Notes: generated from the sequence alone by a model not told the origin. A stretch of 64,000 nt of DNA from IMGVR_UViG_3300010389_000001:62001-126000, one strand, 5' to 3'. Shown: positions 16,750 through 34,409, counted from the stretch's first letter. Made by a program: numbers and translations.

Positions 16750-17079
16750 ATGTCGAATGCCGACTTTGAAAATGCTGTTTTAGATAGGCTTTCGTCTATT
16801 GAGAACAGGCTTTCTTCAATCGAAGATAGTCTAACTGGAATAGGTGATTTTGCATCAGATATTATTTCTGACGAATCGAGCCCGCTAAATCTAGAGATGC
16901 TAGAGTCACTGAAGACGACTCTATCTTCACTATCTGTTCCGCTCGATTCATTTGATCCGACTCAAGGAGTCGATAAAGATAATATGTCATTCGAGGAGGT
17001 GGTTGGATCATTAAACGAGTTTAAAGATAGAATTGCAGGCATCAGAAACGCTATGGCTGCAGCAACTGAAAAAAGTTAG
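16750..17079 (+). CDS. Hypothetical coiled-coil protein
   Basis: AGGAGGT RBS, heptad repeats. Confidence 0.6.
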   Translation: MSNADFENAVLDRLSSIENRLSSIEDSLTGIGDFASDIISDESSPLNLEMLESLKTTLSSLSVPLDSFDPTQGVDKDNMSFEEVVGSLNEFKDRIAGIRNAMAAATEKS

Positions 17080-17108
17080 TAGGCAAACTGAATTCGGGTG
17101 CAAATTTC

Positions 17109-17137
17109 TTGCACCATATCCCAGCCCGGTTATAGGT
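17109..17137 (+). promoter_or_regulatory. Repeated 29-nt promoter-like element, copy 3
   Basis: Identical to 4780-4808; overlapped by inverted repeat GGTGCAA-N5-TTGCACC. Confidence 0.7.
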
Positions 17138-17189
17138 AGGCGTGGCACCGGGCCGCGCCGAAAATTTCCCCCCAAAGAGGTTGTTTAAG

Positions 17190-18266
17190 ATGAATATTGC
17201 ACAGACCAAAGAAGTTCTCAAGGATATGCCTGCCGATAAGTCGGTTATGCTTCACGCTAAGCACGGCGTTGGAAAGTCCTCTGTTGTTCGCCAGGCTGCA
17301 GAAGAAATTGCTGCTTCTACTGGCGAAGAGTGCGGGTTTTTCGATGTTCGACTTTCGCAGTGCGAAGTTGGCGACATTAAGGGAATGCCTGTTACTGATG
17401 AGGAGCGAGACATTATTCGCTTCCTAAAGCAAGAGTGGTGGCCCCGTGCTATGGATTCAAAGGGCATCCTTTTCTTCGATGAGCTTAACCGAGCATCAAA
17501 GGATGTTCTTCAGGCTGTCTTTGAGATTTGCCTTGACCGTCGCCTTGATGGCGAAAAGCTGCCTGATGGTTGGCGCGTAGTCGCTGCGGTTAACTCCGAT
17601 GATGACTACGATGTTGTTGAGCTTGACCCTGCTCTGCATGATCGCTGGTTCCATATCGAGTTTGACCCCTCTGCTGAAGAGTGGCTCACCTGGGCTCGTA
17701 GCAATGGAGTCCACAAGGCTGTCGTGGAGTTTGTTAACCGCAATCAGAATCTTCTGGACCCTCCCGTTGGAAACCTGGAAGCAGGTCGCGTTTACCCGTC
17801 GCGTCGTAGCTGGGTTTCACTCTCTGATACCATGATCTACATGGGACTTGATTCTCGAACGGATGATGGTATGCTAACCCAAATCACTAAGGGCTGGGTT
17901 GGTCGAGAGATTGCTGTAATGTTCCAGAAGTTCATTACCAATGAGTTCTCAAACCTTCGTCCAGAAGAAGTCATTGACTCCTACGATAAGGTATCTGGAA
18001 AGATTGAAGCTGCTTGCAATGACATTGAGGTTATCGCAGCCCTTTCCCGCTCTGTTGTAGCGGAGGTCAATGAGCGTAGCCTTACGACTATGAAGGAAAA
18101 GCAGCGTACCAATCTTCGCAAGTTCTTTATGGCTCTGCCGCCTGACGTAGCATCGCAGGCTTGGGTCGGTCTTCTTGCCGGTAAGAAGTCGAAGAAGATT
18201 GTTATGGAGTGGCAGTCTGATGAGGACTTCCGTGAGCATCTTAAGGTGATTTACCTTAGCAACTGA
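17190..18266 (+). CDS. MoxR-like AAA+ ATPase
   Basis: Walker A variant AKHGVGKS, Walker B ILFFDELNRA, sensor VAAVN, LDPALHDRW, PSRRSW; ATG 17190 after GAGG. Confidence 0.88.
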   Translation: MNIAQTKEVLKDMPADKSVMLHAKHGVGKSSVVRQAAEEIAASTGEECGFFDVRLSQCEVGDIKGMPVTDEERDIIRFLKQEWWPRAMDSKGILFFDELNRASKDVLQAVFEICLDRRLDGEKLPDGWRVVAAVNSDDDYDVVELDPALHDRWFHIEFDPSAEEWLTWARSNGVHKAVVEFVNRNQNLLDPPVGNLEAGRVYPSRRSWVSLSDTMIYMGLDSRTDDGMLTQITKGWVGREIAVMFQKFITNEFSNLRPEEVIDSYDKVSGKIEAACNDIEVIAALSRSVVAEVNERSLTTMKEKQRTNLRKFFMALPPDVASQAWVGLLAGKKSKKIVMEWQSDEDFREHLKVIYLSN

Positions 18267-18364
18267 TTTGGGGAAACCCACAGGGGGGCACAGGGTTATC
18301 AGGTGTCCCGCTCACTCTTTCCTCAAAAGATATTGAAACCCACCTGTTTGCGAGGGGATAAACA

Positions 18365-19510
18365 ATGGCTAACTCACAGATTAGAGCGCGACTTGATTCC
18401 GCTATTTCAAAACTTATCTCTTTTCAGCCGCTTTACGGTGAGGTTTTCCTTCATCTAAACAAGCGCGAAAACAAGGAGATTCCAACGATGGGCGTTGGAG
18501 TTATCCGTCGCGTAGATTTGGCTCTTTACTACAATCCAGATTTCGTCGCAGGACTTAGCTCAACTGAGCTTAGAAGCGTCCTTAAGCATGAGGCTTTGCA
18601 CGTTCTTCTGCATCATCTTACGCGAGCAAAGCACTTTGCTTACAATCCTCGTGGATACAACATTGCTGCAGATTGTGCAATTAACTGTCATATTGAGGGG
18701 CTTCCAGATGGAGCCCTTTATCCAAAGCAGTTTAACCTCGATGATAACCAGTCTTCTGAGTTCTACTACGAGAAGCTAAAGAAGGAAGCAGAGGACAAGC
18801 ATGGAGGAGACTTCGACAAGGCGATTGAAGGCAAGGGAGATACTGTAGACGACCACGGTATGTGGGGCGAATTTGACGACGATATTATCGAAGAGAAGGT
18901 CCGCAATATCGCAGAGAAGGCTATTAAGGAACAGGAGAAGAAGGGCTGGGGAAGCATTCCTGGCGGCCTTGCAGGTCAGATTATTGCTGCAAACAAGCCT
19001 GTTGTAAACTGGAAGAAGGAAGCTCGTTGGTTTATCAACAAGGTTGTTATGATGGGTCGTCGCAGTACCCGTATGCGCCCTAATCGTCGCTACGGAACAT
19101 CGCAGCCTGGGAGCAAGAGAAACTACACTAGTCGCCTTCTTGTTGCGTTTGATACTTCTGGCTCTGTTTCAAATAAGCAACTTGAATACTTTGCTACAGA
19201 GCTAAACGGTATGATTGACCACGTTCAGGCTGACTTTATTCAGTTTGATACCCAAATCTATGGAAAGCCAGAGCCTTACTCAAAGCGCGCTGCCAAGCTG
19301 GACATTAAGGGTCGAGGAGGCACTTGCTTTGCTCCAGTCATTCACATGGCCGATGAAGAGAGGTATGATGGTCTAGTTATCTTTACGGACGGTTATGCTC
19401 CATTCCCTGCAAAGCCAAAGACCCGTGTGATGTGGGCTGTTTGTGAGCGTGATTCAGCCGTAGAGTTTCCATACGGAAAGAAGGTTGTGATCGAAGAAAA
19501 GTCTCGATAA
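18365..19510 (+). CDS. Metallopeptidase + vWA domain protein (DUF2201-type MoxR partner)
   Basis: HEALH, NIAADCAIN, MIDAS DTSGS, GRGGT, FTDG. Confidence 0.88.
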   Translation: MANSQIRARLDSAISKLISFQPLYGEVFLHLNKRENKEIPTMGVGVIRRVDLALYYNPDFVAGLSSTELRSVLKHEALHVLLHHLTRAKHFAYNPRGYNIAADCAINCHIEGLPDGALYPKQFNLDDNQSSEFYYEKLKKEAEDKHGGDFDKAIEGKGDTVDDHGMWGEFDDDIIEEKVRNIAEKAIKEQEKKGWGSIPGGLAGQIIAANKPVVNWKKEARWFINKVVMMGRRSTRMRPNRRYGTSQPGSKRNYTSRLLVAFDTSGSVSNKQLEYFATELNGMIDHVQADFIQFDTQIYGKPEPYSKRAAKLDIKGRGGTCFAPVIHMADEERYDGLVIFTDGYAPFPAKPKTRVMWAVCERDSAVEFPYGKKVVIEEKSR

Positions 19511-19520
19511 TAAATGTCGC

Positions 19521-19563
19521 GGGGGCGGGCTGGGTTTATCCTATGCCTGCCCCTATTTTTTTT
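19521..19563 (+). terminator. Intrinsic terminator
   Basis: GGGGCGGGC...GCCTGCCCC hairpin plus T run. Confidence 0.75.
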
Positions 19564-19617
19564 GGCTTACCAACTGAGCCTCGCCGGGCAAAGCACTTAC
19601 ATTTTAATAGGATTTTT

Positions 19618-20814
19618 ATGATTCACGAAATAACAAAGACTCATTCTAGAATTGCGACCATCATAGTAGCATTTGATGCTGGCTCAAGAAACGAGAAGAG
19701 ATCAAGGCATAATTATGGCATAGCTCATATGCTTGAGCATTCTATCTTTAAGGGCACTCAAGAGATGAGTGCAATGGAGATCCAAAAGAAGATAGCTTTT
19801 TTGGGAGGAAGATCTAACGCCTTTACTTCGCATGAGATGGTAGCATACTATATCACTGTTCCTTATGAAAACATAGAATCCTGCATGAGCATTCTTTCGG
19901 ACATGGTATTTAATCCGGTTTTTCCTGAAGAAGAAATTATCAGAGAAATTGAGGTTGTGAAAGAGGAGGAAATGTCAACAAAGGACGATACCGAGGGATA
20001 TATCTGGAATGAATTTTCCTCTAAATTCTTTGGCGACCATTATCTTGGCGTTCCAGTCATTGGGTATCAGGATACGATCTCTAGGTTTACCAGGGATGAG
20101 ATCGATTCATTTCACAAAAGATTCTGCAGCAGAAAGGATGCTATCGTATCTCTTTGCAGTAACTTAACCAAAAAAGACTCAAAGGCTTTGCTTACTAAGT
20201 ATTTTGGCAAAGCCAGCGGCAGAACAAAGACGCACTACAAGTTTGATGACCCAGTTTACGGCGATTCATGCGAGCTAAACCTTTCTAGAACGGGGCTGGA
20301 GCATTCATACGTGTGGATGGGTATGCCATCTATAACCAAGTCCTCAGACATGGGGCCTTCCGTGAGGCTTCTTACGTCTATACTCGGATCCGGTATGGAC
20401 TCAAGGCTATTTGAGGAGGTAAGGGAAAAGCGAGGACTTGTATACGGGGTATCTGCATCATCCAGCGAATGGCAAAATGGAGGGCTATCTCTGGTTGAAT
20501 TTTCCACTAGAGAGGCAAACGTAGAAGAGGGTATGCAGGTGGTCCTGGGTGAGCTAGAGAAGATCAAGACCACACTTGTTAGCGACGAGGAAATCCAGAG
20601 AGCAAAAAACAAGATTAGAGCTTCTTTCTATTCGGCTATAGAGGATAGTTACAACCTAGCATCCTGGGCTCTAAAGAAGAGGCTCGTAGGTATACCTGAG
20701 ATTGATGATTATATGAGGATGATAGATGAAGTGAGCCCAGAGGATATAAGGGCTGCTGCAAAAGAAATATATAATACAGATAAGCTTTTGACATGCATCT
20801 GTAGAGGCGATTGA
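19618..20814 (+). CDS. M16-family zinc peptidase
   Basis: AGSRNE, GIAHMLEHSIFKGT (HxxEH), NAFTS, SRLFEEVREKRGLVY; ATG 19618 lies after the terminator. Confidence 0.93.
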   Translation: MIHEITKTHSRIATIIVAFDAGSRNEKRSRHNYGIAHMLEHSIFKGTQEMSAMEIQKKIAFLGGRSNAFTSHEMVAYYITVPYENIESCMSILSDMVFNPVFPEEEIIREIEVVKEEEMSTKDDTEGYIWNEFSSKFFGDHYLGVPVIGYQDTISRFTRDEIDSFHKRFCSRKDAIVSLCSNLTKKDSKALLTKYFGKASGRTKTHYKFDDPVYGDSCELNLSRTGLEHSYVWMGMPSITKSSDMGPSVRLLTSILGSGMDSRLFEEVREKRGLVYGVSASSSEWQNGGLSLVEFSTREANVEEGMQVVLGELEKIKTTLVSDEEIQRAKNKIRASFYSAIEDSYNLASWALKKRLVGIPEIDDYMRMIDEVSPEDIRAAAKEIYNTDKLLTCICRGD

Positions 20815-20825
20815 GTCGCTTACCC

Positions 20826-20850
20826 CCCCGGCAGTGATGCTGGGGTTTTT
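20826..20850 (+). terminator. Intrinsic terminator
   Basis: CCCCGGCA-GTGA-TGCTGGGG-TTTTT. Confidence 0.8.
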
Positions 20851-20900
20851 AATTTGTGGACCGCTCTAATGCTGTGCCTATAATATGGGAGAGGGGTAGC

Positions 20901-21095
20901 TTGAGCGACTTTACCAATTCAAATCCTGCTGATATAGCTTGCCTAACCAATCACCTAATAGCCGCTATAGATAGTTACATTAGGGAAGTGCCAACCTATA
21001 AGGAGGATCTTTATAGGGCGGAATCTGAGGTTAGTAGATATCTTTTTGATTTAGCAAATTATTGCGACGAAAAAGGTCATGCAGATGAGCGGTAA
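20901..21095 (+). CDS. Small hypothetical protein
   Basis: TTG start after GAGGGG; TATAAT at 20879-84. Confidence 0.45.
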   Translation: MSDFTNSNPADIACLTNHLIAAIDSYIREVPTYKEDLYRAESEVSRYLFDLANYCDEKGHADER

Positions 21096-21123
21096 TGGGT
21101 AGCCGTCTATCCGGGAGAATGAT

Positions 21124-21360
21124 ATGGCAAGATACAATTACATGCTTCCGAGAACGGAGCAGATTAGAAGGTGCAGTAACGGACTAGAGCATTATTACGT
21201 CCCCATATCTGTGTGCGCGAGCACAAATAGTGTTGGCGTTCGCTTTGTATGCAAGAGATGCGAAGCTCTAGCCGCAGGATTCTTTACAGAAGAAGAATAC
21301 GAGCTTAGAAGAAATACTATAGAAAAAGCAATAGAGAAAGCGGGAGGAACTTTGGCATGA
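21124..21360 (+). CDS. Small Cys/His-rich (Zn-binding?) protein
   Basis: C..H and CKRC motifs; GGAG RBS. Confidence 0.5.
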   Translation: MARYNYMLPRTEQIRRCSNGLEHYYVPISVCASTNSVGVRFVCKRCEALAAGFFTEEEYELRRNTIEKAIEKAGGTLA

Positions 21361-21584
21361 AGGAGCAGGTTAATCATCCCGGCCACTACCAGTTTGGAGA
21401 GAAGGACGCAGATGGAACTTCGAAGTACGAGGCAATAAAGGTAATTGAAGCTTGGGATTTGGACTTTCATCTTGGGAATGTTGTAAAATATGTTTCGAGA
21501 GCGGGAAGAAAAAGCGAGTCTCCGCTCCAAGATATTAAAAAGGCAAAGTGGTATCTTGATAGGTGGCTGGAGAAAAATAGTTAG
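21357..21584 (+). CDS. DUF3310-family phage protein
   Basis: VNHPGHY, FHLGNVVKYVSRAGRK, DIKKAKWYL. Confidence 0.9.
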   Translation: MKEQVNHPGHYQFGEKDADGTSKYEAIKVIEAWDLDFHLGNVVKYVSRAGRKSESPLQDIKKAKWYLDRWLEKNS

Positions 21585-21594
21585 GAGGGTTGAG

Positions 21595-21885
21595 GTGAAT
21601 TATACAAATCAATATTATCCAGTGGCTATAGCTCTAACTAATGAGTGGGGCTGGCAAGCGATCTATGAAGGCTTTGACTTTAGGGGCCTCACCTTTGAAA
21701 AGGTCTTTTGGTTGCGGAGTCCATCAGATGAGCTTGGGCTGCAAGTTGGGCTTTACACAAGTCAGAATAGTTCTAGCGAACTTGCTGGCGGAGAGAATAT
21801 GCTTGTGCCTGAGCTATACCGAATGATAAAGTCATTCGATATTGAGCTTGATTTGGAAAAGATAAAGGAAGATGGCCGAAAATGA
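21595..21885 (+). CDS. Hypothetical protein
   Basis: GTG 21595 after AGGAGG. Confidence 0.5.
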   Translation: MNYTNQYYPVAIALTNEWGWQAIYEGFDFRGLTFEKVFWLRSPSDELGLQVGLYTSQNSSSELAGGENMLVPELYRMIKSFDIELDLEKIKEDGRK

Positions 21886-22370
21886 GGTTTGTTGACGTAT
21901 TTGATCTTCCGGAGGAAAGGCCCAAGAGAATCGTTATAGCCTCAGGTTATTTTAATCCTTTGCACGTAGGGCATGTGGAGTATCTGCATTTGGCCAAATC
22001 ATGCGGAGACGAACTATGTGTTATCGTAAACAATGATGTTCAGCGCGCCTTAAAAGGTTCGAGCTATTTTATGAATGAGCAAGAAAGGCTGTTAATTATC
22101 AAAAGCCTGAGAGATGTTGATCATGTTATTCTTTCAATAGATGATGACAGAACCGTGTGCAATACTCTTCGTGAAATAAGTAAGGTTCATGCTCCGAAGT
22201 GGCATAATAATTGTAACCTTTATTTTGCAAACGGCGGCGATCAAAAAAATGACTCAATCCCAGAGAGAGCAGTTTGCGAAGAGCTAGGCATAGCCCTAAT
22301 TGATCGACTGGGCGAAAAGATTCAGTCTTCATCATGGCTTATAGATGGAGGTAGAAATGAGCCTTATTAG
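21882..22370 (+). CDS. Cytidylyltransferase-like nucleotidyltransferase (HxGH family)
   Basis: SGYFNPLHVGH, VIVNND, FANGGD, KIQSSS. Confidence 0.88.
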   Translation: MRFVDVFDLPEERPKRIVIASGYFNPLHVGHVEYLHLAKSCGDELCVIVNNDVQRALKGSSYFMNEQERLLIIKSLRDVDHVILSIDDDRTVCNTLREISKVHAPKWHNNCNLYFANGGDQKNDSIPERAVCEELGIALIDRLGEKIQSSSWLIDGGRNEPY

Positions 22371-22569
22371 AAAGAGCGCATTTCATATGGTTGTTCGCTG
22401 TGGATTGGGCGCTCACGGAGCAATTCATTTGATTGAATTTTTCATAAACTTGTTTGAGCGAGCCTGGGGATCTGCATTCTTCACGCTTTTGGCGGCCTTA
22501 CTAATGCTGTCAGGCGCCTTAATTGATTATCAGCACCATTCTGAGGGAAAATATGAAGTACCAAGTTGA
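22357..22569 (+). CDS. Small two-helix membrane protein
   Basis: Two hydrophobic segments; GGAGGT RBS. Confidence 0.5.
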   Translation: MSLIRKSAFHMVVRCGLGAHGAIHLIEFFINLFERAWGSAFFTLLAALLMLSGALIDYQHHSEGKYEVPS

Positions 22570-22921
22570 CGTAGATTACATTGGAGCAAACACTAAAATT
22601 GTGTGGACTTACAATGGCGAAAAACATTGTGAGCATGGACCTGCAGTTTGGTGGCAAGACGGAACTTATGACTTTTATTTAAATGGGGTATCGCTTTCGG
22701 TAAGCGAGTGGGAAGAGGCTGTTGACAGGCAGTGGAACCCTCAAGCAAAAAGGTCATCAAGAAGGGAGTTCCCCAAAGTTTATCTCGTAACGAAAGTTAC
22801 TTCGAATGGTGCCTCCGAACCTGTTGCAACTTTCGATTCCCTGGCGAAAGTTGATGAGTTTATTCTGAAGAATGAAACTGATGAAATTTGGTTCAACTGG
22901 GTTCAAGTAGAGCTTAGGTGA
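22553..22921 (+). CDS. Hypothetical protein with one HxxxGPAV viral beta-repeat
   Basis: KHCEHGPAVWWQDGTYDFYLNG. Confidence 0.5.
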   Translation: MKYQVDVDYIGANTKIVWTYNGEKHCEHGPAVWWQDGTYDFYLNGVSLSVSEWEEAVDRQWNPQAKRSSRREFPKVYLVTKVTSNGASEPVATFDSLAKVDEFILKNETDEIWFNWVQVELR

Positions 22922-23345
22922 TCTGCACGCGCGCTTGCAAGTGCGCCTGAAATGGAGGCTTCAGATATGAGAAAGAAAAAGGTAGTTGGAGATTTATGTC
23001 CTAGCTGCGATGATTCAGTAGAGTGGTATCCGATTCCTGATTCACTGGCATCAGCCTGCGAAGATTGCGGATTCGTCAGAATTTACTTAGGAGAAAAGGA
23101 TGCTGAAGGAAACTTACTTTATGATGTAGGCGTCTCAATCCCCGAATGGTTGCAGAGTCTTTATGAGCCAGATGTTAGCGGCAGCCTGCGGAGGGCAAAG
23201 TGACCAAAGGAAACGATCGCTTATTTTGCTCAACTAATAATAAACATTTGTTTATTTTGAAATCCGATTGCTCTCATGACTGGATCTATCTCGGCGGTCA
23301 CAATGAGCTTTGGGTTTGCAAGAAATGCGGAACTAAGGAAAGGCG

Positions 23346-23552
23346 ATGAAAGTCGGTGATAGAGTAAGAGTCAAGAAAGATGGGCAACTTTGTTGGGCGA
23401 AGTCAGGCAGGATATATGTTCCAGACTTTTATATCGGATATGTGACTTATGTGAATCACGGGAATGGAAATCTGATGGTTCATCTGGAAGAATTAGATGA
23501 CAGAGTTCAGACTAGCATTGAGCACTGGATTGAGGTAGAGAGCGAAGAATGA
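23346..23552 (+). CDS. Small MKVGD-type (SH3/KOW-like) phage protein
   Basis: MKVGDRVRV start; similar starts at 23549 and 31209. Confidence 0.55.
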   Translation: MKVGDRVRVKKDGQLCWAKSGRIYVPDFYIGYVTYVNHGNGNLMVHLEELDDRVQTSIEHWIEVESEE

Positions 23553-24586
23553 AAGTCAGAGATCTTGTAAGGCCAAAAAGTCAGTGGGATGAAAACTTCA
23601 AAAAGAAAAAGCATGATATTGGTCTTTTAATAGACATTGAAAAAGACTTCTATCGCCACAACGATTATTTTCAAGATCGTTTGACTATCTTGTGGTCACA
23701 TGGTGAAATAACAAAAGAGCCCCCTGGCTATGTGGAGGTTATGAAATGAGCAACGAAGATCAAATCGCAAAAGAAATCGCTAAAATGACTGATGATGAAG
23801 TTATTCAAAATGTCGAGAAGTATTTCCCGAAATGGACTGCAACCGAGTCTATGAAGCGTATGCTCACCAAATACGGACGTTTGGATGAACAAGTTTATTT
23901 TCTTGAGATTCTTCGTCTTGAGTCTCTTTGTCGCAGAGCGGCAGAGGAGATCAAAATGCTTGATGATAAGTTGCAAGAGATTTCGCCCGATCCAGATGGC
24001 ACTCACACCTCTGTAAATCTGCTTTCAAGACTTGACGGACGGATTGGTGGGTGGTATACTATGACTGAGCCAAACGAGGAGAAGTGATGAAAGTTTGGGT
24101 CGTAACAAAACGATGGGTTCACGAAGATCGTATGAATGTTGCCGTTTTTTCAACGGAAACGGCAGCGTACAATTTTGTTAGAGACAATGAGACAGACGAC
24201 AATTGGCGAGTTTGTTTTGATGTTGAAGAGTGGGAGGTTGATAGTGAGTGTAAAATGGCGAAGGCTTGTGATATTATTTGATTTGTAAGGAGAAATAATG
24301 AGCGCTGACAAGACTGGGTGTCCTAAGTGTGTAACTGGATCTATTCAAGAAACTTATCTCACTCCCCCAGATAAAGGAAAAGTGAAGGGATGTAATCGCT
24401 GTTCATATTTTCATTACGACCCATACGAAGTGGATTGGGGTGCTCTTCCACCAGAGGTCTTCGACCAATACACAAATGCCTGTGAAGAGGTTAAGAACCC
24501 TGTGATTGTTGAATCCACACCAAAAAAGAAGCAAAGTCACTTCGAGAAGTTGTATCACATGAATCTTCTCGTGAACGAAAAAAAAG

Positions 24587-24615
24587 TTGACACAGAGACC
24601 TAAGTGGGCTATACT
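24587..24615 (+). promoter_or_regulatory. Near-consensus sigma70 promoter
   Basis: TTGACA-17 nt-TATACT with an A-tract upstream; predicted start ~24622. Confidence 0.85.
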
Positions 24616-24621
24616 GTGAAC

Positions 24622-24743
24622 ATAGAGTGAGGCGGTATTACGCAGGGTTCTACTGAGACGATACACGACCCGGTTCAAGGAATAAGCGTCTAACAAAGGA
24701 ATACTTGAACATCTGTGGGTTTAAACCCCACCACTCTATTCCA
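24622..24743 (+). ncRNA. tRNA-like non-coding RNA, non-canonical
   Basis: Acceptor ATAGAGTG/CACTCTAT plus T-CCA; T-arm GTGGG-TTTAAAC-CCCAC; three internal helices; no canonical 7-nt anticodon loop. Confidence 0.7.
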
Positions 24744-25710
24744 TAATGAAGTTACCCCGATTGTAAGGATCAAGCAGGAGAGGGATAAACTCCATGATTG
24801 CTAATCTGCGGGTGGGGCTGGAAACAGTCAGTTAGGTGGGTTGGTTGCCTAACACCTTTTGGGAGAGAAGAATGAATGATAGACAAGGGCACCCAGAGCC
24901 AGAAGATTGTTGGCTTTATTACTGTGTGAGCCTGAAAGAAGAATACAGAACCGAAGAAGGGCAAATTCGCATTCATCCATCACTTCCTATCGAGGGGGTG
25001 GTTAGTGCGGATCTAACCGATCCTGATGTTTTTTGTGTGGTTCACGGAACAGGATCAATGGTGAGAATGCTCCAAGAACACAAAGGGTTTTATGAAAAGA
25101 AGGAATATGCAAACGAGTTTGCTGAATTTATGTTCAGTTTTGCTCAACAAAACTTGGAGAGAAGAAAATGAGCGATGAGTTTGTAGACAAGAAAGGTATT
25201 CGGTGGCATCCCAAAGAAATGCTCAATGACCTATCACAGCGTCTCGAAACAGCCAAAGCATTTCACAGAGTTGCCGTAAAAGAAAGAGATTACGAGAGAA
25301 CTCTCTGCGACCGATACAAAAAAGAACTGTACGAACTTCGCTCACTTTACGAAGGTGTTCTTTCTCGCATAAACAAGTTGGAAGACGATACAAGGTCAGC
25401 GATAGAGTTTGCCGACCTCGCAGAAGACGATAAGGGAACAGAAATGATCTTAGAATTCTGCGATGATATTACAAAGTTGGTTGGAGAGTGAAGGTGAGCC
25501 AACAAGAGGTAAAACAAGCAGTTGCTCCGATGTGGATAAATCTTGATGCTGCCAACAACCGTCTTAGGCAAATCTCACAACTTTGCTGGGAACTTGTAAA
25601 CGAACTAAGAGAAGCAGACAATCTTCTTGTTGGCGAATACCCAGATGAATTTTCAAAAGTTTTTGACGTAGCAAACGAAATAGAGTCTTGGCTTATTGAG
25701 GGAAAGCAAA

Positions 25711-26091
25711 ATGAAAACAGTTAGTTCTATTGTTCAATCAGAGATTCTTCAGCAACTGCTGGAAAACCAAAGGCGTTTTGCCGAGGTTGCTAAACCTCCT
25801 TTCTATCCTAAAACTTGGAAGGAGTTTCGCAATCGAGAACTCGCAAACTATATGAGCCGCGAAAGGGGAAAGAAGCGTCTTCGTAAGAAAAAGGCTCTCA
25901 AGAGAATGCGAGAAGTCTGGGGTTTCTATCTTCTTACCCGACCAGTAAGCCATTTTGTGAACTACCAAGAGCTGGGAAGAAAGCTGTTCCCCGTCCAGCC
26001 TCTCCCAGATGGCGCAAAGCTCATTTACAGCAACCACACTGATAACGAAAGGCATCGCATCGCAGAGATTATCAGAGGGAAGATCGAATGA
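25711..26091 (+). CDS. Basic hypothetical protein with capsid-protein-like segment
   Basis: VNYQELGRKLFPVQPLPDGAKLIY. Confidence 0.45.
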   Translation: MKTVSSIVQSEILQQLLENQRRFAEVAKPPFYPKTWKEFRNRELANYMSRERGKKRLRKKKALKRMREVWGFYLLTRPVSHFVNYQELGRKLFPVQPLPDGAKLIYSNHTDNERHRIAEIIRGKIE

Positions 26092-28484
26092 GTTCTAGCG
26101 TCGAAATCAAAACGGACGGATGCAAGTCTCTTTACCTTGATATAAAGACCACAGGTGTAGAGTTTGAGGCTTGGAATCAAGATTATCCAGAAGCGGAACT
26201 CATTACGATGTGGTTTGATCTGAAAGACAAGGAAGATCGAAAGGCAATCAAGAATCTTATTTCACATCTCCAGCATCAGTTGCAGGTTCATGAATCACCT
26301 CCCTATTCTACCTGTCCTTCCTGTTCTTGGCTAAAAAGAGAGCGAGGTGTTGAGGCCTGTGAGGAGCATAGCAAATGATTGGAACAGCAAAGAGGCTTGT
26401 TGAATGTCGCTATTTCCGATGGCTTCCGGGTATGCGAGACTTGGGCGGAAACTTTTATCTTGGGCAAAGAGCAAATGCACCAGAAGGCGTTCATATGTGG
26501 GCCGGTTTTGATAGGGGAAGTTGGGAGTGGAACGAAACAGAGTTTGGACTACCAGACCTTGAAGATCCCGCAACCCTTGGGTGCGTTCTTGCTTTGGTTC
26601 GCAACGCTTGGAAAGACGATGGTATTGCGTGTGTAACGGGTTCTTACACCGCAGAGTCAGGTTACAGGTTTCGCATCATTGGTGGAATGCGCCAAGATAC
26701 AAAGTTCTTTATGATGAGCCAAAAGCATTACCTTTCAGAAGGCGAGGCACTTGTTGCTGCTTTGGAGTTGGCAGGATGACTAACGAAGATTTCAACAAGA
26801 ATATGAGCAGAATGTTCTTTCGTCTTGGAAATGCTTTCCGCGATGTAAGAGACAATATGATCGAAAACTTTGGAAGAGAAAACGATACATCAGAACTTCT
26901 CTTTCGCCTTGAAGAAGTTTGCGATATTATGATTGAGCATTATGGGGAGGAAGAATGATTTCTCTTTACGGAATCAGGGAAGAACATGAATATGGTTACG
27001 GCGGCTGGACAGGAAACCGAGAGACTATCCGAGAGCTTGTTGCTACTTTCGATGAAGTTCAAGATGCAAAAGACTATGTGAAAAACTCAACGCTTGCAGC
27101 AGCAGATAAGCCCTACTTTCGTGCTGATCCCATTTCGGGAAAGTTTAGATATAGAAAAGGTTCTTTACTTCGCCATTATGAAAGCTGCGAGATTGAGATT
27201 GAGGAAGAAGAAAACCCTCCTCCTCATAATCCGATAATGCCAAATGGAGACTATTAATGAAACAAGATGCTGCATACATCAATTCCTACAATGCCGGATA
27301 CCACAGAGGTCTAAATACTGAATACCACGATATTCCAATCAACATTCTTTTCACTAAATGGATTGCTGATGTTCGCAGACCAGCATCAGAGGCACTTGAT
27401 ATTGTTGCTTTTGAGAAAGGCTTCAATGACGGCATAGAAGATTATGAAGATTCTCTGAAAGAATTCGGAGACGGAGCAGCAACTACAGCAGGTTGGGAGA
27501 AAAAATGAAAGAAACACTTGAAGACTTTATGAAACAATTGCACCACAACCACACCTCATTTGAGGAATTGGCTCATTGGTATCATGATTTAGAAAAAGAA
27601 TGTGCAAACCTTAAAGAGAAAAACGAAAAGATGTTTGAGGTCCTAAGGATTATTTGGGATGCCGATGCACTTCAGCAGTGGGCTTGGGAAGATCCTGATG
27701 ATGAAGGTTCAATTGCTGACTTGGTTCGTGAAGTTGTGAGAGGCAAATAACAATGGATATTAGACCAGAAAACAACAAAGACACTTTTCGCGGAAGAGGC
27801 AAAACCATCGAGGAGTTGAGAGATCAAGTTAATTTCTTAAATGAAGAACGAGAGCGCTTAATCAAGAAGCTTGAAAAGATCGAAAATCTTTCTCGGTACG
27901 CTTGGGAACAAGTTAGCAGAAATCCGGAAGAAGCAGTAGAGCTTTTTAGAATGATAAACTTTGAGAGTAAGTGATGAACGATTATTTTGAAGATCTATCT
28001 TACGAACTAAGAGAAGAGGTTAGCGATCTAAAAGAACAACTTGGCGCTCTAAAGTCTATTATTCGCCAAACCTACAAGGCGATTGGCTGCTCTGACGATA
28101 TTATCGAAGGAGAAGATTGGGGAGGTTTGCCTTCAAGGGTTGCTTGTCTCAAAGCGGCTGTTGACCTATCGATTCAGCGAGGAAAGGAAGCTGAGAAAAA
28201 TCTTGAGATCTATCGACGGATTGATCAGTTGGAGTCAATTGTAGAGTCTGTGCTTGATGATAGAGATATTGAGGACTCTTACTACGTTTTGAAAACAGAC
28301 TATGACGCCTATCAAGAAGAGCATTACGCGATCAAGCACGACCGTCCTCACAAGGAAGTAGGAAGAGGAAGGGCGGCGAAGGTTCATAGAGTTCCAACTG
28401 CTGACGAGATGGTTGCGTCTCAACAAATGACAGCACCAACAAGGCTGGAAATTGAATGGAGAAACATTCAAAAGGTGAATGAGA

Positions 28485-28709
28485 ATGAGTAACTATCAAC
28501 TATTGCAAAAACTCAAAAAAGCGTTTGAAAAAGCCAAGAAGACCGACCGTTCTTTTGAAAGAGCCCTGCATTTCAGAGGGGATATGTTCAGACTTGAAGA
28601 AGAGTTGTTTGAAGCACTCGGAGCAAAAGACACCTCAAAGTGGTATGACTGCGCTCATTGTGATGCCGGATACCCAGACCAAGAATGTACTTGTGAGAAC
28701 GAAGAATGA
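28485..28709 (+). CDS. Small protein, paralogue of 30567
   Basis: AFEKAKKTDRSFERALHFRGDMFRLEEELF; Cys-rich tail. Confidence 0.65.
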   Translation: MSNYQLLQKLKKAFEKAKKTDRSFERALHFRGDMFRLEEELFEALGAKDTSKWYDCAHCDAGYPDQECTCENEE

Positions 28710-29523
28710 AATGGCTCTTTGCACACTTTATATTTCTGCCCTTTATTTGGATCATGGATAAGCTTGGAATTAGGCCATAGGTGAAAGATGACACGTAGAG
28801 AAATTATTTGTGTGATTACTGGTGCTTTAATTGTGGTAGTCCCACAGTGGATCAGCGTACTTTGTCAATTGATATTGTCGTAAAGGAGAGCAAAAAAAAT
28901 GAAAAAGTGGGCAGTTTATCAATCGCGTTCAAAGTATGATCTCTCAAAAGGTTTTCGTAAGAATCCAAAAGGTTATGTGATTGCGGAGACTGAGGACGAA
29001 GCACACGTTGAAGTGGGCAAATATATTTTTATTCCAGATGGCTATTGGGCCAAAGTTGTCGAGGTGGAAGAATGAAGGTTCGCATTGACTACTCACACTA
29101 CGTTATTGTAGATGTGCCGGACAGTATCATTAAACAAGATGAGAACGGATATTATGGCGATTTGCCATTTGAGTTTGATGAAATGTTTGAAGTTCTAAAG
29201 GCCCATGTCCCAGAGGGGGCAGAGGTAGAGGGTTGGGAATATCCAGACTTGTTGCCAGAGGGTGGAGAATGAAGGATGGTGATTTCTACAAATTTAACTA
29301 TGACTTCAAGCCATTTGTTACTTTTTTTCAGTCAAAAGTCGCGAATCCTGACGCGATCTTTCTGTACTTGTTTAACAACAGGTTTCGTGTGAATTATACA
29401 CATAATAAGTCCGAAACAAGAGAGACAGGCTTTTACTTTCATGTCTTTATGCCAGAAAGCTGGTACTTACAGGTCTGTTTTTGCAATCACAACTTTGGAT
29501 TTACTTGGTAAGGAGAGCGAAGA

Positions 29524-29916
29524 ATGAATGGTAGTATTAACGTAACCCATCACCCGGAACATAACTTCACAATTTATCGTGGAAATTCTGGCACAGGCAA
29601 AACAGCGCTATTGGCAGGTCGAGCAACTCAAGCAAATTGGCATGGCAAAAAGGTGCTGTGGCTTTCTACTGATATTGCAAACGATCACATTCGTAACATT
29701 GCAACTGATTGCATTAGGGTTTATGATCTGTCAACACTGCGTCAAATTATGGACAGCGATCAGTTTCATCTTTATGATATGGTTGTATTCGATGATATTG
29801 GGCGATTGGACGTTCCCATGGATATGCTAAGTGCTCAGTGCATTGCAGACTTTCGCAGTCGCAACAAAAGGGATGGGCAAGTTCGATTGTGCTCGCTCAC
29901 GGTGAGGAAAATGTAA
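29524..29916 (+). CDS. Small P-loop NTPase-like protein
   Basis: GNSGTGKT Walker A, MVVFDD Walker B-like. Confidence 0.6.
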   Translation: MNGSINVTHHPEHNFTIYRGNSGTGKTALLAGRATQANWHGKKVLWLSTDIANDHIRNIATDCIRVYDLSTLRQIMDSDQFHLYDMVVFDDIGRLDVPMDMLSAQCIADFRSRNKRDGQVRLCSLTVRKM

Positions 29917-30566
29917 TGAATTATTATGTAGAAGAAGAGGCCAGTAAGGCTGGCTATAGGCCTATTGAACAAGATGAGTGGGAAGAAGTTGTTTCAGAGG
30001 GCTTTATTTACAATGATGTAACCAAGGTAGGGTTTAGGCGATACAGAATTGTTGAATTAAATGAGCGATGGTATTGCTGGGTTACTGAACCCCGTTATGC
30101 TCAGCCTGCTGATCCTAAAACATGGCACACTTGCTGGGAAATTGATTCAAAGATTGAGATTAGCATAGAAGGCTTTCAGCGCTATCGAAATTTTTTTATT
30201 GAGATAGAACAGCTTATTAGTGATAAATAACGAGGTCATTGTGAATTTTTCCGTAGAAGAAGAAGTCCGCTCCCTTATATTAGGTGAGCGATTTGCTGGT
30301 GAGTTTCAGGGCGTCTCTTACGAGGTAAAGATTTGTTGGAGCGAAGACTGGACCGTAAACGTTGACCTGTTAAAATTTAAACCGCGCATGGGTTCGCACA
30401 CACATTTCTGGCTGAGTAAAATTACAAACGTGATTATCGAAGAAGTTCTTTACGATGCTATCTACGAACTTCCAGAAGTAGTAGATTTTCAAAAGCGGAT
30501 TGATGCTATGCGAGATGTTGATGAAGATGTTTTGGATAGCATTATTGAAAAGGTGGAGAACGAAGA

Positions 30567-30734
30567 ATGAAACCACCTGACCTGACTCTTTTAATCATGG
30601 AACTCAGAGAAGCATTTAGAGAAGCCAAGAAGTCTGATCGCTCTTTTGAAAGAGCCCTGCACTTTAGGGCTGCTATGTTTCAACTTGAAGAAGAGTTGTT
30701 TTTATTTCTTGAATCTATGGAGAATGAAGAATGA
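30567..30734 (+). CDS. 55-aa protein, paralogue of 28485 (not in the ORF track)
   Basis: AFREAKKSDRSFERALHFRAAMFQLEEELF; junction repeat on both sides. Confidence 0.7.
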   Translation: MKPPDLTLLIMELREAFREAKKSDRSFERALHFRAAMFQLEEELFLFLESMENEE

Positions 30735-31401
30735 AAAAGGTATCTGCAACAATTACTATTGATGTTGCTGCATGGGTAAAGGACAACTATGATACTGATG
30801 AGCTTATCCAATATCTCAAGTGCTACTATGATGGCGCTGTGCCAGATGGCTGGCTCCATGAGATTGAGGAGTTGGAAGGCAAGCAAACAGTATCTAATGT
30901 TGTAGTGGAGAACGAAGAATGACTAAAATGAAGAAGAAAAACAGAATGGGAGCACAGACAGAAGAATACATTTTTATTCTAAAGCACCAAAAAACGATGG
31001 GCGAGGACGATCAATTTTTCTGTGTTCAAGTGCAAATTGAAGGCGGTCGACCTGACTATGTCCAAGAGATTATTGACAGTGTAATAGAAGACTTAGAGGC
31101 TAAGCATAACGCATCCGTTCTCTATTGCACAAATCTAAACTGTGTAGAATATTATCGTGCAGAAACAGGCATTAGATTAATTGAAATGTAAAGCGTAGGG
31201 AGTAAAGAATGAAAGTCGGCGATACTGTAAGGCACATTCCGCTTTCAAACGGCGCCTCTCTGGGTAACGGAGAAGTCCTGAGAGTCGGAAGTGATAAGGT
31301 CGAACATGATGTAGTTCTCGTAAACTTTTATGATTACGATGGGAAGCTGCCAGTTCGATGGATGCTCCCAGAGACCATTGAGTTGGTAGACAGTCAGCGC
31401 A

Positions 31402-31722
31402 ATGATTGAAGAAGAGGAGATTGAGGCGGCTCTAATATTGCTCGAAAGATCTAATGATGTAAGAGTTAGGGATAGAATAGCAATGGATCTTTGCGAAATG
31501 CAGGTCGAAGAGATAGTCCCTGTTCTAACGAGGGTGTTGCCCCAGCAAAGAGTTATTGGAAAGAGGTCCACGCTGATTTATGCTCTAGGAAAAATTGAGA
31601 GAAAAGAAGCATTTACTCCAGAGATTATCTCAGTCCTTCGGTACATCGATGAAACTGACGAAGGTGGAGCCGGCGCTGAAGCTGAGATTATCCTAAAAAG
31701 ACTGCGTGAGGATAAAGAATGA
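31402..31722 (+). CDS. HEAT-repeat-like protein
   Basis: VRDRIAMDL...VPVL...LIYALGKI pattern. Confidence 0.55.
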   Translation: MIEEEEIEAALILLERSNDVRVRDRIAMDLCEMQVEEIVPVLTRVLPQQRVIGKRSTLIYALGKIERKEAFTPEIISVLRYIDETDEGGAGAEAEIILKRLREDKE

Positions 31723-32224
31723 ATGAAAATCTAAGTAAGATGTACCGCTACTTAAGAGAACATAAAGTCATTGGCGAAGAGCAACTCAGAGAGCTTGAGT
31801 CGATGGGTATGATTCCAAGAGACAAGCTTAAGGACAGAGCCTATTACAGAGGCATCTGCCGAAACACCAGCATTGCTATGTGGGTGGAAAGTCCAGGCTG
31901 GCCTTCAAAGGATGAATTGCCCTCCCCAAATCTAGACAGAGGGCCTTGCTTTTATCATATGAGGGAGAAGGCAAATGTAATCTATGTAGAAACGATTAAC
32001 CATCCAGCCGATGATGATGGCTTTGATCTTTTTATTCCGGTTGAAGAATTGTTGCCATATGATGAATAAATATTATATTGAAAAATATAGTTGCTTAAAA
32101 CAAAAGATTTCATATTAAAATCTATCACCTTATTACTTTTTGAGCATGGGATAAGAAAAGGCTTTCTGACGAAGAAGGCTTCAAAGAGGGCGGAAAAAGT
32201 TATTCAGACTATTAGGAGCAAGGT

Positions 32225-32809
32225 ATGAAGCCGGAGCTAGACGAAAAGCTGGTAAAAGCTTTTCCAAATCTTTACTCAGATCGTTATATTGGAAATAAGT
32301 CTAGCGGAATGCGCTGGGGCTTTTCTTGCGGAGATGGATGGTTGGATATCATCTGGGATTTAAGCTCAAAGCTTGAAAAGATAATAGAAGATTATATTCA
32401 AGAAAATCCAGATATGTCTTGTGCAAATTGCGCTTGTTCTAAAGCTAAGCACTATGGCTCAAAGACTATTTCTCCCGGTAGGTGTCTTTCGATTCATATA
32501 GACCCAGAATCAGAAGGAGAGCCTCCAGAAAATTATTATGCTTGTTTCTGCGATAAGTACAGGGGAGATTACCCAAGGGCGCTACAAGTAAAGGAGAAGT
32601 TTGGTGGCTTAAGATTTTATATGACATCAGCAAGTGATCAAATATATGATCTTATTCGAAAGGCAGAAGAAGAATCGTATTCAACTTGCGAATATTGCGG
32701 AAGCAATGGAGAGCTAAGGGATACTCGCTGGAGGAGAACCCTTTGTGATGACTGCTATTCAGAGCAGCTTGGGGTGCAAGCCTCTGATGATGGCATAACT
32801 GTTAGGTGA
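32225..32809 (+). CDS. Conserved phage hypothetical protein
   Basis: CGDGW, QVKEKFGGLRFY, CEYCG...LCDDC. Confidence 0.65.
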   Translation: MKPELDEKLVKAFPNLYSDRYIGNKSSGMRWGFSCGDGWLDIIWDLSSKLEKIIEDYIQENPDMSCANCACSKAKHYGSKTISPGRCLSIHIDPESEGEPPENYYACFCDKYRGDYPRALQVKEKFGGLRFYMTSASDQIYDLIRKAEEESYSTCEYCGSNGELRDTRWRRTLCDDCYSEQLGVQASDDGITVR

Positions 32810-32815
32810 CCGATC

Positions 32816-33313
32816 ATGGAAGATGACGTTATAAGAATAGCTTTTTATAAAAATGGAAGAGGCCTAGTCCATAACGTTGTTAGGTGGTATACGAATAGCA
32901 AATATTCACATGCAGAGTTGATTATGCCAGATGGCACAACTTGGATTACAATAAGTCCATTTTATAATTCAAGAGTTACTCCAAGAATTGTAAGCGAATA
33001 TGATGAAGATAAATGGGACTTTATAGATCTTCCGCTAAGTCAGAGAGATCCCGTTAGAGAATACCAAAAAATAAACTTGGTTAAATTTATAGAGGATACT
33101 TCTGGAGATAGATACGACTGGCCGGGTATGTTGCTTTCAAATCTAACTCCCTTTAAAGTTCGTAGGGCAAACAGGTGGTATTGTTCCGAATGGATTGCTT
33201 ACGCCCTTATATACTCCAGAATAATAATGTGGGATGAAATAAAAATGTACAACGCACCGGACATGAGTCCCGGAAGGTTGCACGGTCTATTGAATTCTCT
33301 AACCGCCAAGTAA
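32816..33313 (+). CDS. Permuted papain-like (NlpC/P60, YiiX-like) enzyme
   Basis: YSHAEL (His) precedes WYCSEW (Cys); YDW motif. Confidence 0.75.
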   Translation: MEDDVIRIAFYKNGRGLVHNVVRWYTNSKYSHAELIMPDGTTWITISPFYNSRVTPRIVSEYDEDKWDFIDLPLSQRDPVREYQKINLVKFIEDTSGDRYDWPGMLLSNLTPFKVRRANRWYCSEWIAYALIYSRIIMWDEIKMYNAPDMSPGRLHGLLNSLTAK

Positions 33314-33562: not shown

Positions 33563-33886
33563 ATGGATTTTGTTGATCTTGTAATATTCCTCCTGGTATC
33601 AGCCGGGGCAACTTCTGGAGTTGTAGGAAGCTCGCTTCTTGAGCCGGTAAGATTTTTTATATTTTCTAGATCAGATTTTCTAAAAGAACTTTTGAGCTGC
33701 CCAATGTGTACCGGACTTTGGGTTGGAGTATTCTTTTCTGCCTTCTTTGGCATGAATCCCGTGTATGCCGGCTTGTCCTCAAGTCTAGTTAGTTGGCTTG
33801 CATATTCTTTTGCTGATGCATTAAACACGGTTACTTTTTATTTTGAAACATTAATTGAAAAAGAGGAATCAGATAGCGATGACTAA
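33563..33886 (+). CDS. DUF1360-like membrane protein
   Basis: Hydrophobic helices with ELLSCPMCTGLWVG. Confidence 0.65.
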   Translation: MDFVDLVIFLLVSAGATSGVVGSSLLEPVRFFIFSRSDFLKELLSCPMCTGLWVGVFFSAFFGMNPVYAGLSSSLVSWLAYSFADALNTVTFYFETLIEKEESDSDD

Positions 33887-34409
33887 AGATGGAAACCTAA
33901 AGGCAGAGGCGGTCAGAATATCAGTTCCAGGCAGAGTCTGGGATTTGCTGTGGAGGGACGATGAGTTTTACAGAGAAGTTTCTTCAAACAAAAAGGTATC
34001 CTCGTCTGGAAAGTTCCCTAGATGCGACCAATGGTGCGATTCAGATGGCTTTCATATGGCCTTCGCATTAGCCGGATACAGCCCTGGCGATATTAGCATT
34101 AACGTTCGTGGTAACGAGGTAGAAATTAGGGGCTTTTGCGAAAAGCTCGGAGAAGCACTCGGCGATTCTAGTGATCGATCCGTGCCTTCGGATGAAGAGG
34201 ACTATCCGGCGCTAACTCCGACCGTTGCCGTGCAAAGAGGCATGATACTAAGAGGAATTGCCAGGAGAAATTTTCAGGCAAAATATTTTATTCACACTTC
34301 ATTTGATCCCTCAAGTATGCGGGCAGCGATGGTGAATGGCTTACTTGAAATAGTCATTCCCGCAAGAGATGAAGTTCAATCTGTAAGCATAGATATATTG
34401 GAGAAGTAA
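33879..34409 (+). CDS. Small heat-shock protein (Hsp20)
   Basis: FALAGYSPGDISI, RGIARRNF, AAMVNGLLEIVIP. Confidence 0.85.
   Translation: MTKDGNLKAEAVRISVPGRVWDLLWRDDEFYREVSSNKKVSSSGKFPRCDQWCDSDGFHMAFALAGYSPGDISINVRGNEVEIRGFCEKLGEALGDSSDRSVPSDEEDYPALTPTVAVQRGMILRGIARRNFQAKYFIHTSFDPSSMRAAMVNGLLEIVIPARDEVQSVSIDILEK

Follow-up and report, generated by a model that had tools for sequence, protein, structure and literature searches.

A shared 16-base ribosome-site/stop-start linker between reshuffled mini-genes of a large environmental phage

Described systems of cassette exchange and the present locus

The closest described system is that of the PeSLs (promoter-early stem-loops) of T4-type phages (Arbiol et al. 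2010, PMC2839356; Comeau et al. 2014, PMC4122927). PeSLs are repeated conserved motifs concentrated in hyperplastic regions full of ORFans, and indels and replacements between relatives are bounded by them. They bring expression signals with the cassette, so recombinants stay viable, and the proposed mechanism is recombination between repeats, which could produce circles. PeSLs are intergenic, with conservation spread over about 100 bp, and combine a sigma-70 promoter, a terminator stem-loop and an SD, so each cassette is its own transcription unit. In integrons, promoterless single-gene cassettes lie in one orientation, each bringing its own distinct attC site (imperfect inverted repeats, about 60-140 bp), with an adjacent IntI-type tyrosine recombinase. 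Furthermore, the modular theory of phage evolution, as discussed for lambdoid phages, proposes that short conserved boundary sequences are the sites where homologous recombination joins otherwise unrelated modules, although the lambdoid examples appear to be few, heterogeneous and debated.

Here we analysed a window of 64,000 nucleotides (IMGVR_UViG_3300010389_000001, positions 62001-126000) of a 232,533-bp environmental phage record; coordinates below are those of the window. As in the PeSL system, the element lies in a region rich in ORFans, and indels between relatives are bounded by it. However, the conserved block is only 16 nt, GGAGARYGAAGAATGA, with background composition on both sides. 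It is nearly all purine and cannot pair with itself. Promoter-like sites in the array were not above the shuffle expectation (39 against 33.3 +/- 5.5), and neither a promoter-like nor a terminator-like site coincided with a copy. It usually lies inside the coding sequence of the upstream gene, within long operons, where it is inferred to act at the level of translation. As in integrons, the array has one orientation, is apparently read from an upstream promoter, and varies in cassette content and order between relatives; that the cassettes are promoterless is inferred only from the gene overlaps and a consensus scan. However, the 16 nt have no dyad symmetry, no attC-type palindrome is present, and no PF00589 match was found in the record, which is 68% complete. 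The linker is also nearly identical between cassettes and follows the resident genome. With respect to the boundary sequences of the modular theory, the same short sequence does lie between unrelated modules here and homology breaks at its edges in both directions, and a single 16-mer recurs in 133 contexts before 80 protein families, with a measurable excess of reassortment. Ordinary translationally coupled junctions also have an SD and a four-base ATGA overlap, and the same genome has 64 ATGA sites with 35 or more open codons on both sides. However, ordinary junctions differ from each other in the spacer. In our data no other 16-mer at a gene start was shared by more than 3 families, whereas the linker variants preceded 48, 30 and 13 families.

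The linker and the accessory array

The array comprises about 45 small + strand genes (24-194 aa) at 20901-33313, with 18 four-base start/stop overlaps, and most products have no Pfam or PHROG function. Its transcription unit likely starts at 20826-20884 (+), where a terminator-like hairpin (20826-20845) follows the M16-peptidase gene and precedes a promoter-like TGGACC-16-TATAAT (20857-20884). This assignment rests on a consensus scan only, though the array also starts here in the synteny comparison. The best promoter-like site inside the array, TTGACA-17-TATACT at 24587-24615 (+), matched 11 of 12 consensus positions and lies in the 268-nt gap before 24872, but its function has not been shown. 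Related loci are designated below by L numbers. L002 and L003 lack the whole array, and in L003 the homologues of 19618-20814 and 33563-33886 lie about 850 bp apart.

The preliminary description reported a shared 15-nt junction, GAGA[AG][CT]GAAGAATGA, and this observation is correct. Exact copies lie at 23538, 28695, 29513, 30556, 30720 and 30908, all on the + strand at gene starts, and 100 dinucleotide shuffles gave 0 matches. The four looser copies that it listed, at 26944 (GGGGAGGAAGAATGA), 29061 (GAGGTGGAAGAATGA), 31198 (GGGAGTAAAGAATGA) and 31708 (GAGGATAAAGAATGA), are real, and we found two more at 24861 (GGGAGAGAAGAATGA) and 29258 (GAGGGTGGAGAATGA). No further copy exists in the whole record on either strand. 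In our gene model, 10 of about 52 gene starts in genome 80-100 kb were preceded by AAGA directly before the ATG, against 0 of about 252 elsewhere. The motif was absent from all junctions outside the accessory array, including a second small-gene region that uses a different leader. Sixty nucleotides on either side of the copies showed no similarity to each other, so the copies are not the ends of longer duplications. Comparative data showed that the conserved block is really 16 nt, a G followed by the 15-mer, with GGAG (GAG in 2 of the 6 window copies) 8 nt before the ATG.

The ATG at motif positions 12-14 starts the next ORF in every case, and the TGA at positions 13-15 stops the previous ORF in 5 of 6 copies. 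Copy 1 (23538-23552, AGC variant) stops 23346-23552 (tail VESEE) and starts 23549-23749. Copy 2 (28695-28709, AAC variant) stops 28479-28709 (tail CENEE) and starts 28706-28780, which encodes only a 24-aa hydrophobic peptide, though it is conserved in a relative. Copy 3 (29513-29527, AGC variant) is non-coding: the upstream gene stops at 29511, the motif closes only a 28-codon frame, and it starts 29524-29916 (130 aa, P-loop or kinase-like). Copy 4 (30556-30570, AAC variant) stops 30241-30570 (tail VENEE) and starts 30567-30734. Copy 5 (30720-30734, AAT variant) stops 30567-30734 (tail MENEE) and starts 30731-30922, and copy 6 (30908-30922, AAC variant) stops 30731-30922 (tail VENEE) and starts 30919-31191. 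Among the loose copies, 24861-24875 starts 24872-25171, 26944-26958 stops 26776-26958 and starts 26955-27257, 29061-29075 stops 28899-29075 and starts 29072-29272, and 29258-29272 stops 29072-29272 and starts 29269-29511. The copy at 31198-31212 is intergenic and starts 31209-31409, whilst that at 31708-31722 stops 31402-31722 and starts 31719-32069. However, the proteins joined in this way are not all unrelated, contrary to what had been suggested: 28479-28709 and 30567-30734 are paralogues, 65% identical over 31 aa (E 9e-14).

Breakpoints at the linker in related phages

The preliminary description proposed that the junction may act as microhomology for integrase-free gain, loss and shuffling of genes, and our comparisons support this idea, although "microhomology" and "integrase-free" remain inferences. 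Homology with L039, L040 and L041 starts exactly at 23538, with four different upstream partners. In L012, the linker of 28695 and the peptide gene follow a different gene, a homologue of 21990-22370 that there ends LENEE. Also in L012, homology runs through the copy at 29061 and ends 2 nt after it, followed by a different downstream gene, and the orthologue of 29524-29916 has a different, shorter junction, TGGAGATGAAAATGA. The L011 orthologue of 30919-31191 has another upstream partner and the junction GAGAGCGAAATATGA. Homology to L001, L012 and L014 starts at the left edge of the copy at 31708, and the gene 31719-32069 has five different upstream partners in five genomes. Indels were also found. 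L011 lacks 31209-31722 and joins 31212 directly to 31714 through the shared AAAGAATGA, so two genes (510 nt) are absent. L039 lacks 24872-25171, with the joint in the GGAGAGAAGAA shared with the junction at 25157, and the gene 26955-27257 is absent from L039 and L040. The 55-aa cassette 30567-30734, flanked by copies 4 and 5, lies in L041 (9640-9807, 92% nt identity) between two linker copies, with a different upstream gene and the homologue of 23549-23749 as neighbours, whereas L039 lacks exactly this 164-nt unit.

The double-motif pattern was found in about 35 other viral contigs of IMG/VR, always on one strand per contig, with up to 11 copies in 12 kb. A logo from 133 unique contexts showed a sharply bounded 16-nt block. 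In 60 locus pairs with the same downstream but a different upstream gene, identity was 0.26-0.29 up to -7, 0.97 in the motif and 0.6-0.78 after it. The 48 mirror-image pairs showed 0.63-0.69, then 0.97, then 0.26-0.32. Identity thus falls to background at the edge facing the unshared gene, on whichever side that is. Across 38 loci, the upstream neighbour was conserved at 4/24 and 0/31 linker junctions against 19/31 and 21/31 other tight junctions between small genes (Fisher p 0.001 and 5e-9). However, linker-type cassettes could simply be a more dispensable class of gene, which would confound this test; the locus pairs are not independent, and most comparison loci were chosen because they carry the motif. 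Individual cassette families had 4-5 different neighbours in 4-5 loci. Spacing between neighbouring copies equalled 2 mod 3 in 62 of 93 cases, as expected for single ORFs running from linker to linker. Non-linker junctions in the array were also mosaic, but with only 2-6 nt of junctional identity against 9-11 nt of linker sequence at linker joints, so the linker is a hot spot and not a requirement, and selection for intact genes explains part of the pattern. A feature new here is that the variable dinucleotide (positions 5-6) is uniform within a genome (87% concordance against 40% expected) and differs between lineages. Furthermore, shared cassettes carried the resident genome's variant in 43 of 50 cases.

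Possible roles of the linker

Without experiments or read-level junctions, we favour, with moderate confidence, the explanation that the motif is a portable translational-coupling linker, with a Shine-Dalgarno GGAG, a fixed 8-nt purine-rich spacer and an ATGA in which the next gene's start overlaps the previous gene's stop. It would join promoterless mini-genes into long operons in the accessory region of a group of environmental phages. Because the same 16 bases sit between many unrelated genes and in many related genomes, they would be the place where DNA exchange joins cassettes. Recombination inside the linker preserves both the upstream stop and the downstream start, every product is therefore an intact, already expressed gene string, and such products survive. 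We infer that the exchange is driven by short homology, either through strand annealing or invasion by general recombination functions (a RecA-like ORF and an SbcC-like gene are present) or through template switching during replication. We also infer that no dedicated recombinase is involved and that the junction does couple translation. No integrase, resolvase, RecT, ERF, Rad52 or clear HNH or GIY-YIG match was found, but the record is only 68% complete and a dedicated enzyme cannot be excluded. However, sixteen bases is short for RecA-type recombination, and simple crossovers in the longest identical stretch do not predict that the variable dinucleotide follows the resident genome and not the cassette.

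A less likely possibility is that the 16-mer is kept identical because a trans-acting factor reads it on the mRNA, such as a translational repressor or activator, or an endoribonuclease that times expression of this gene class, in the manner of T4 RegA or RegB, with recombination being incidental. The motif is restricted to one gene class and always lies at the initiation region. The uniform variant within each genome is expected for co-evolution with a genome-encoded reader, and the resident variant on shared cassettes points the same way. In addition, low-GC contigs with no detectable protein similarity use the AAT form in the same role. No RegB-family match was found in the record, but this is uninformative since the control genomes gave none either. 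However, selection alone does not explain how 80 unrelated families acquired 11 identical non-SD, non-start bases with knife-edge boundaries, nor why neighbours are reshuffled specifically at these junctions. This view is compatible with the favoured one, as PeSLs are also both regulatory and recombinogenic.

It is more doubtful that an unrecognised DNA enzyme recognises the 16-mer, either a site-specific recombinase or a nuclease that cuts the linker and provokes repair from a co-infecting genome, copying the resident linker at each event. The pattern resembles an integron, with one site between all cassettes, one orientation, a promoterless array and sharp edges, and the resident variant on both sides of imported cassettes would follow from target duplication or templated repair. 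However, no tyrosine or serine recombinase was found in the incomplete record, and the genes beside the array are a peptidase, a MoxR-type ATPase, a VWA protein and an Hsp20. Loose copies also serve as joints, with crossovers at different places inside them, which fits homology better than site recognition. An unknown genome-encoded reader of either sort, an integrating enzyme, a repair-triggering nuclease or an RNA-binding regulator, would co-evolve with the linker and explain the uniform variant. Such a reader is unlikely but not excluded, and would amount to an integron-like capture system in lytic phages that works on a translational junction.

Tandem duplication of one small gene family is refuted as a general explanation. 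Two linker-associated proteins are paralogues and several downstream genes begin MKVGD or MKVRD, but flanks were at background identity in 6,359 pairs with different neighbours, 80 protein families are involved, all-against-all BLASTP of the array proteins gave almost no hits, and two of the MKVGD/MKVRD pairs showed no detectable similarity. Finally, conservation of the acidic C-terminal peptide E-[NS]-E-E is disfavoured, since although the upstream ORF reads through and ends in ENEE or ESEE in 100 of 132 contexts, the frame is closed and the motif non-coding in 32 of 132 (for example TAAG followed by the motif, or the copy at 29513), codon choice (GAG, GAA, GAA) is invariant where synonymous change would be free, and the invariant partner is the downstream ATG, with a downstream ORF of 30 aa or more in 125 of 132.

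The locus makes the old "linker sequence" hypothesis directly testable and offers a natural design rule for plug-in gene cassettes in phage engineering, and the motif can be used to mine metagenomes for mobile phage mini-genes. The genome-wide uniformity of the variant is an unexplained case of concerted evolution of a 16-nt element. How phages acquire and shuffle their many small accessory genes, which include much of their anti-defence and host-takeover repertoire, is usually put down to rare illegitimate recombination followed by selection, with PeSLs the one well-described exception. This locus gives a second, simpler and much shorter connector, inferred to act at the level of translation, which occurs in many uncultured phages, including lineages with no detectable protein similarity to each other, and comes with quantitative evidence that it is where cassettes are exchanged.

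Linker copies in the accessory array and their genomic context

The virus record under study is 232,533 bp long (42% GC, CheckV completeness 68%), and the genome is almost wholly transcribed on the + strand. It encodes a DnaE-type polymerase, an SbcC-like nuclease subunit, GroEL, a RecA-like protein and other functions. The RecA-family match (genome 127710-128996, just past the window end) was split into three separated stretches within one 552-aa open frame, suggesting inserted segments or an unusual RecA-like recombinase. The phage also carries a chaperone and proteostasis set (window 3172-4773, 15647-20814, 33879-34409), namely GroEL, an Hsp20-family protein, a MoxR-type AAA ATPase next to a VWA/metallopeptidase (DUF2201) protein and an M16 peptidase, together with an IMPDH/GMP-reductase gene. 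Two adjacent large genes (35638-37695 and 37704-39569) share an N-terminal region of about 145 aa (37-39% identity), while their C-terminal parts differ strongly between relatives. The second has a weak baseplate or tail-fibre connector match, thus the pair may be a host-range module with swapped tips. A single 2,324-aa open reading frame (49243-56217) lies between the 433-aa gene and the polymerase gene. Near-match and protein searches of the isolate-phage collection found no close relative, and the polymerase had only matches of 37% identity or less.

The motif GAGA[AG][CT]GAAGAATGA occurred at 23538, 28695, 29513, 30556, 30720 and 30908, all on the + strand, whereas shuffled sequences gave 0. 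The looser copies claimed in the preliminary description (26944, 29061, 31198 and 31708) were also present, with two more at 24861 and 29258. Neither strand of the rest of the genome held a copy. With a simple gene model of 304 genes, the copies lie in an array of about 45 small genes (window 20.9-33.3 kb) that has 18 four-base start/stop overlaps. In genome 80-100 kb, 10 of about 52 starts have AAGA directly before the ATG, against 0 of about 252 elsewhere. Since the motif is absent from all other genes of the genome, we rejected the idea that it represents a general translational optimum. In fact, a second small-gene region (genome 5340-26050, outside the window, with a weak copy at window 4803) does not use the motif and has its own repeated leader, ATAGGGTAGTGTAGGGAGGT, of which about 11 copies lie 4-6 nt before the ATG starts of small genes separated by gaps of 100-300 nt. 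This leader looks like a repeated promoter or leader plus a strong SD, so it may be a PeSL-like system for a second accessory region. The motif is therefore a property of this array, not of accessory genes in general.

In each copy the ATG starts the next ORF, and in 5 of 6 copies the TGA ends a real upstream ORF, with tails VESEE, CENEE, VENEE, MENEE and VENEE. At 29513, the upstream gene stops two bases earlier. The flanks of the copies are unrelated, and longer duplications were therefore rejected. The preliminary description had treated the joined proteins as unrelated; however, two of them (28479-28709 and 30567-30734) are paralogues. Other suspected pairs are not, all-against-all BLASTP of the array found almost nothing, and most products have no known family. 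Two very small hydrophobic ORFs, membrane-peptide-like, at 28706-28780 and 28788-28883 (24 and 31 aa) are conserved at about 90% nt identity in the related contig L012, and the first is started by an exact linker copy.

The array is accessory. In the relatives L002 and L003, which are about 60% identical in protein sequence, the M16-peptidase homologue and the homologue of 33563-33886 lie about 850 bp apart, indicating that the whole array is missing there. A terminator-like hairpin and a promoter-like site sit at the start of the array, and one strong promoter-like site lies in the gap at 24.6 kb. Otherwise promoter and terminator matches were at chance level. This fits a few long operons of coupled mini-genes.

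Gene-content breakpoints and distribution of the linker among viral contigs

Contigs with 80-98% nucleotide identity to parts of the array were fetched and compared. Homology to three of them (L039, L040 and L041) begins exactly at 23538. The gene 23549-23749 keeps the linker but has four different upstream partners, and in L040 the partner is a plain stop codon followed by the linker. In L041 the 55-aa gene 30567-30734 (92% nt identity) lies between a gene absent from the window and the 23549 homologue, with a linker copy on each side. L039 has the same two outer genes joined by a single linker, and the alignment shows a clean 164-nt indel with about 97% identity on both sides. Furthermore, the contig L011 joins 31212 to 31714 through the shared AAAGAATGA, two genes being absent, and L039 lacks 24872-25171, with the joint in GGAGAGAAGAA. 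In L012 an exact linker joins a homologue of 21990-22370, which there ends LENEE, to the 24-aa peptide gene that follows 28695 in the window. However, this joint between window 22340 and 28695 is not a simple deletion. The left flank shares only 2-3 nt with the right flank and is only 71% identical to the window. At 29061 the homology runs through the linker and stops 2 nt after it, while at 31708 it starts at the left edge of the linker. The linker therefore stays with either neighbour.

Non-linker junctions in the array were also broken in one or more relatives, but those joints share only 2-6 nt. A second, minor junction class, GAGGAGRRGTGATGR, was seen at window 24076-24089 and L040:10330-10545: L040 has an extra 67-aa gene inserted at the 24087 junction, flanked by two copies of it that are 13 of 15 identical. 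In another relative (L010:1-141) the homologue of 29524-29916 is cut after about 44 codons and joined to the 31719 homologue by TGGGGAAAAGAATGA, which is a joint inside a gene, not at a boundary. Assembly chimeras are an unlikely source of these joints. We infer this because a 16-nt repeat is shorter than usual assembler k-mers and the same joints recur in independent samples (for example, the contigs L041, L042 and L043).

A pattern of two copies 145-215 nt apart matched about 35 distinct IMG/VR contigs. In every locus all copies are on one strand, with up to 11 exact copies in 12 kb. One locus from a gut metagenome (L029), included only in the motif scan of all loci, had no match. Genes were called and proteins clustered over 38 loci, giving 126 genes with an exact linker start, from 80 families, arranged in runs whose order differs between contigs. 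A logo from 133 unique contexts showed that the element is 16 nt: G precedes the 15-mer in 95% of contexts, only positions 5 and 6 vary, and composition is at background immediately outside. The upstream ORF reads through the linker in 100 of 132 contexts and the linker is non-coding in 32, whilst the downstream ORF has a median length of 72 aa. Spacing between neighbouring copies is 2 mod 3 in 62 of 93 cases. No other 16-mer at a gene start is shared by more than 3 families, whereas the three linker variants precede 48, 30 and 13 families.

To examine whether the linker is a hot spot, we compared locus pairs that share a gene and asked whether the upstream neighbour is the same family. When restricted to genes of 150 aa or fewer with gaps of 20 nt or less, non-linker junctions keep the neighbour in 19/31 pairs (80% aa identity or more) and 21/31 pairs (below 80%), while linker junctions keep it in 4/24 and 0/31 pairs, respectively (Fisher p 0.001 and 5e-9). 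The pairs are not independent and most loci were chosen for carrying the motif, but the effect is large. Position-wise identity showed where homology breaks. With a shared downstream gene only (60 pairs), identity is 0.26-0.29 up to -7, 0.97 in the linker and 0.6-0.78 beyond it. With a shared upstream gene only (48 pairs), it is 0.63-0.69, then 0.97, then 0.26-0.32 from +16. Both edges are therefore breakpoints, as expected if crossovers occur within the linker.

Uniformity of the linker variant within genomes

A new observation was that the dinucleotide at positions 5-6 (AC, GC or AT, giving the AAC, AGC and AAT variants) is nearly uniform within a locus, for example 10/10, 8/8 and 6/6. Concordance is 87% against 40% in shuffles, which is higher than within cassette families (60-64%). 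When the same family sits in genomes whose other copies differ, it carries the resident variant in 43 of 50 cases, and this holds even at 91-96% nucleotide identity of the gene body. The variant largely follows the backbone lineage in trees of flanking genes. Yet L040 (AAC) and L039 (AGC) share array genes that are 95-100% identical. This concerted evolution of a 16-nt element has no obvious mechanism and is not predicted by simple crossovers in the longest identical stretch; conversion between copies, exchange mostly between like variants, or a variant-specific reader are all possible.

Low-GC contigs (0.29-0.38) with no detectable protein similarity to this genome use the AAT form in the same role. 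A contig binned with an Opitutia MAG carries an AAC array, which is a weak host hint. L086 and L089 look like true arrays. However, four MAG hits were discarded as unrelated tandem repeats: L085, L088 and L090, contigs of one Bacteroidota MAG (GC about 0.64), have tandem units of about 109 nt that each contain GAGAATGAAGAATGA and merely happen to include the AAT form of the pattern, and L087 is a simple GAATGAA repeat.

Related systems and possible mechanism

The nearest known system is the PeSL of T4-type phages. PeSLs are repeated regulatory cassettes in hyperplastic regions that bound indels and are proposed to recombine, producing mini-circles. The present element lacks the defining PeSL features of a promoter and a stem-loop, is six times shorter, probably acts in translation and usually lies inside the upstream coding sequence. 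It resembles an integron array in layout but lacks attC and IntI. As far as we know, it is the clearest instance of the 'conserved boundary sequence' idea from the modular theory. Literature searches for shuffling at repeated RBS sequences and for the motif itself found nothing relevant.

Of the alternative explanations, an RNA-level operator for a trans-acting regulator is one of the two main rivals, though we consider it unlikely; a search for RegB had no working control. The other, a dedicated enzyme that recognises the site, is somewhat less likely still. No integrase, resolvase, RecT, ERF, Rad52, HNH or GIY-YIG domain was found, although the record is incomplete. Paralogy as the general explanation and a functional ENEE peptide tail are very improbable, being disfavoured by the background identity of the flanks in pairs with different neighbours and by the contexts where the linker is non-coding, respectively.

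The preliminary description had proposed that the motif may act as microhomology for the integrase-free gain, loss and shuffling of genes. This interpretation was supported by the two tests suggested there, i.e., whether breakpoints in relatives coincide with the motif and whether the motif is equally frequent at core-gene junctions, but the mechanism is still inferred. We judge short-homology exchange the most likely driver, which could work through general recombination functions (RecA-like and SbcC-like genes) or through template switching. The anatomy of the linker, GGAG, an 8-nt spacer and an ATGA overlap, is that of a translational-coupling junction, though coupling itself is inferred. 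Any crossover inside the linker preserves the upstream stop and the downstream start, so recombinants remain expressed without needing a promoter.
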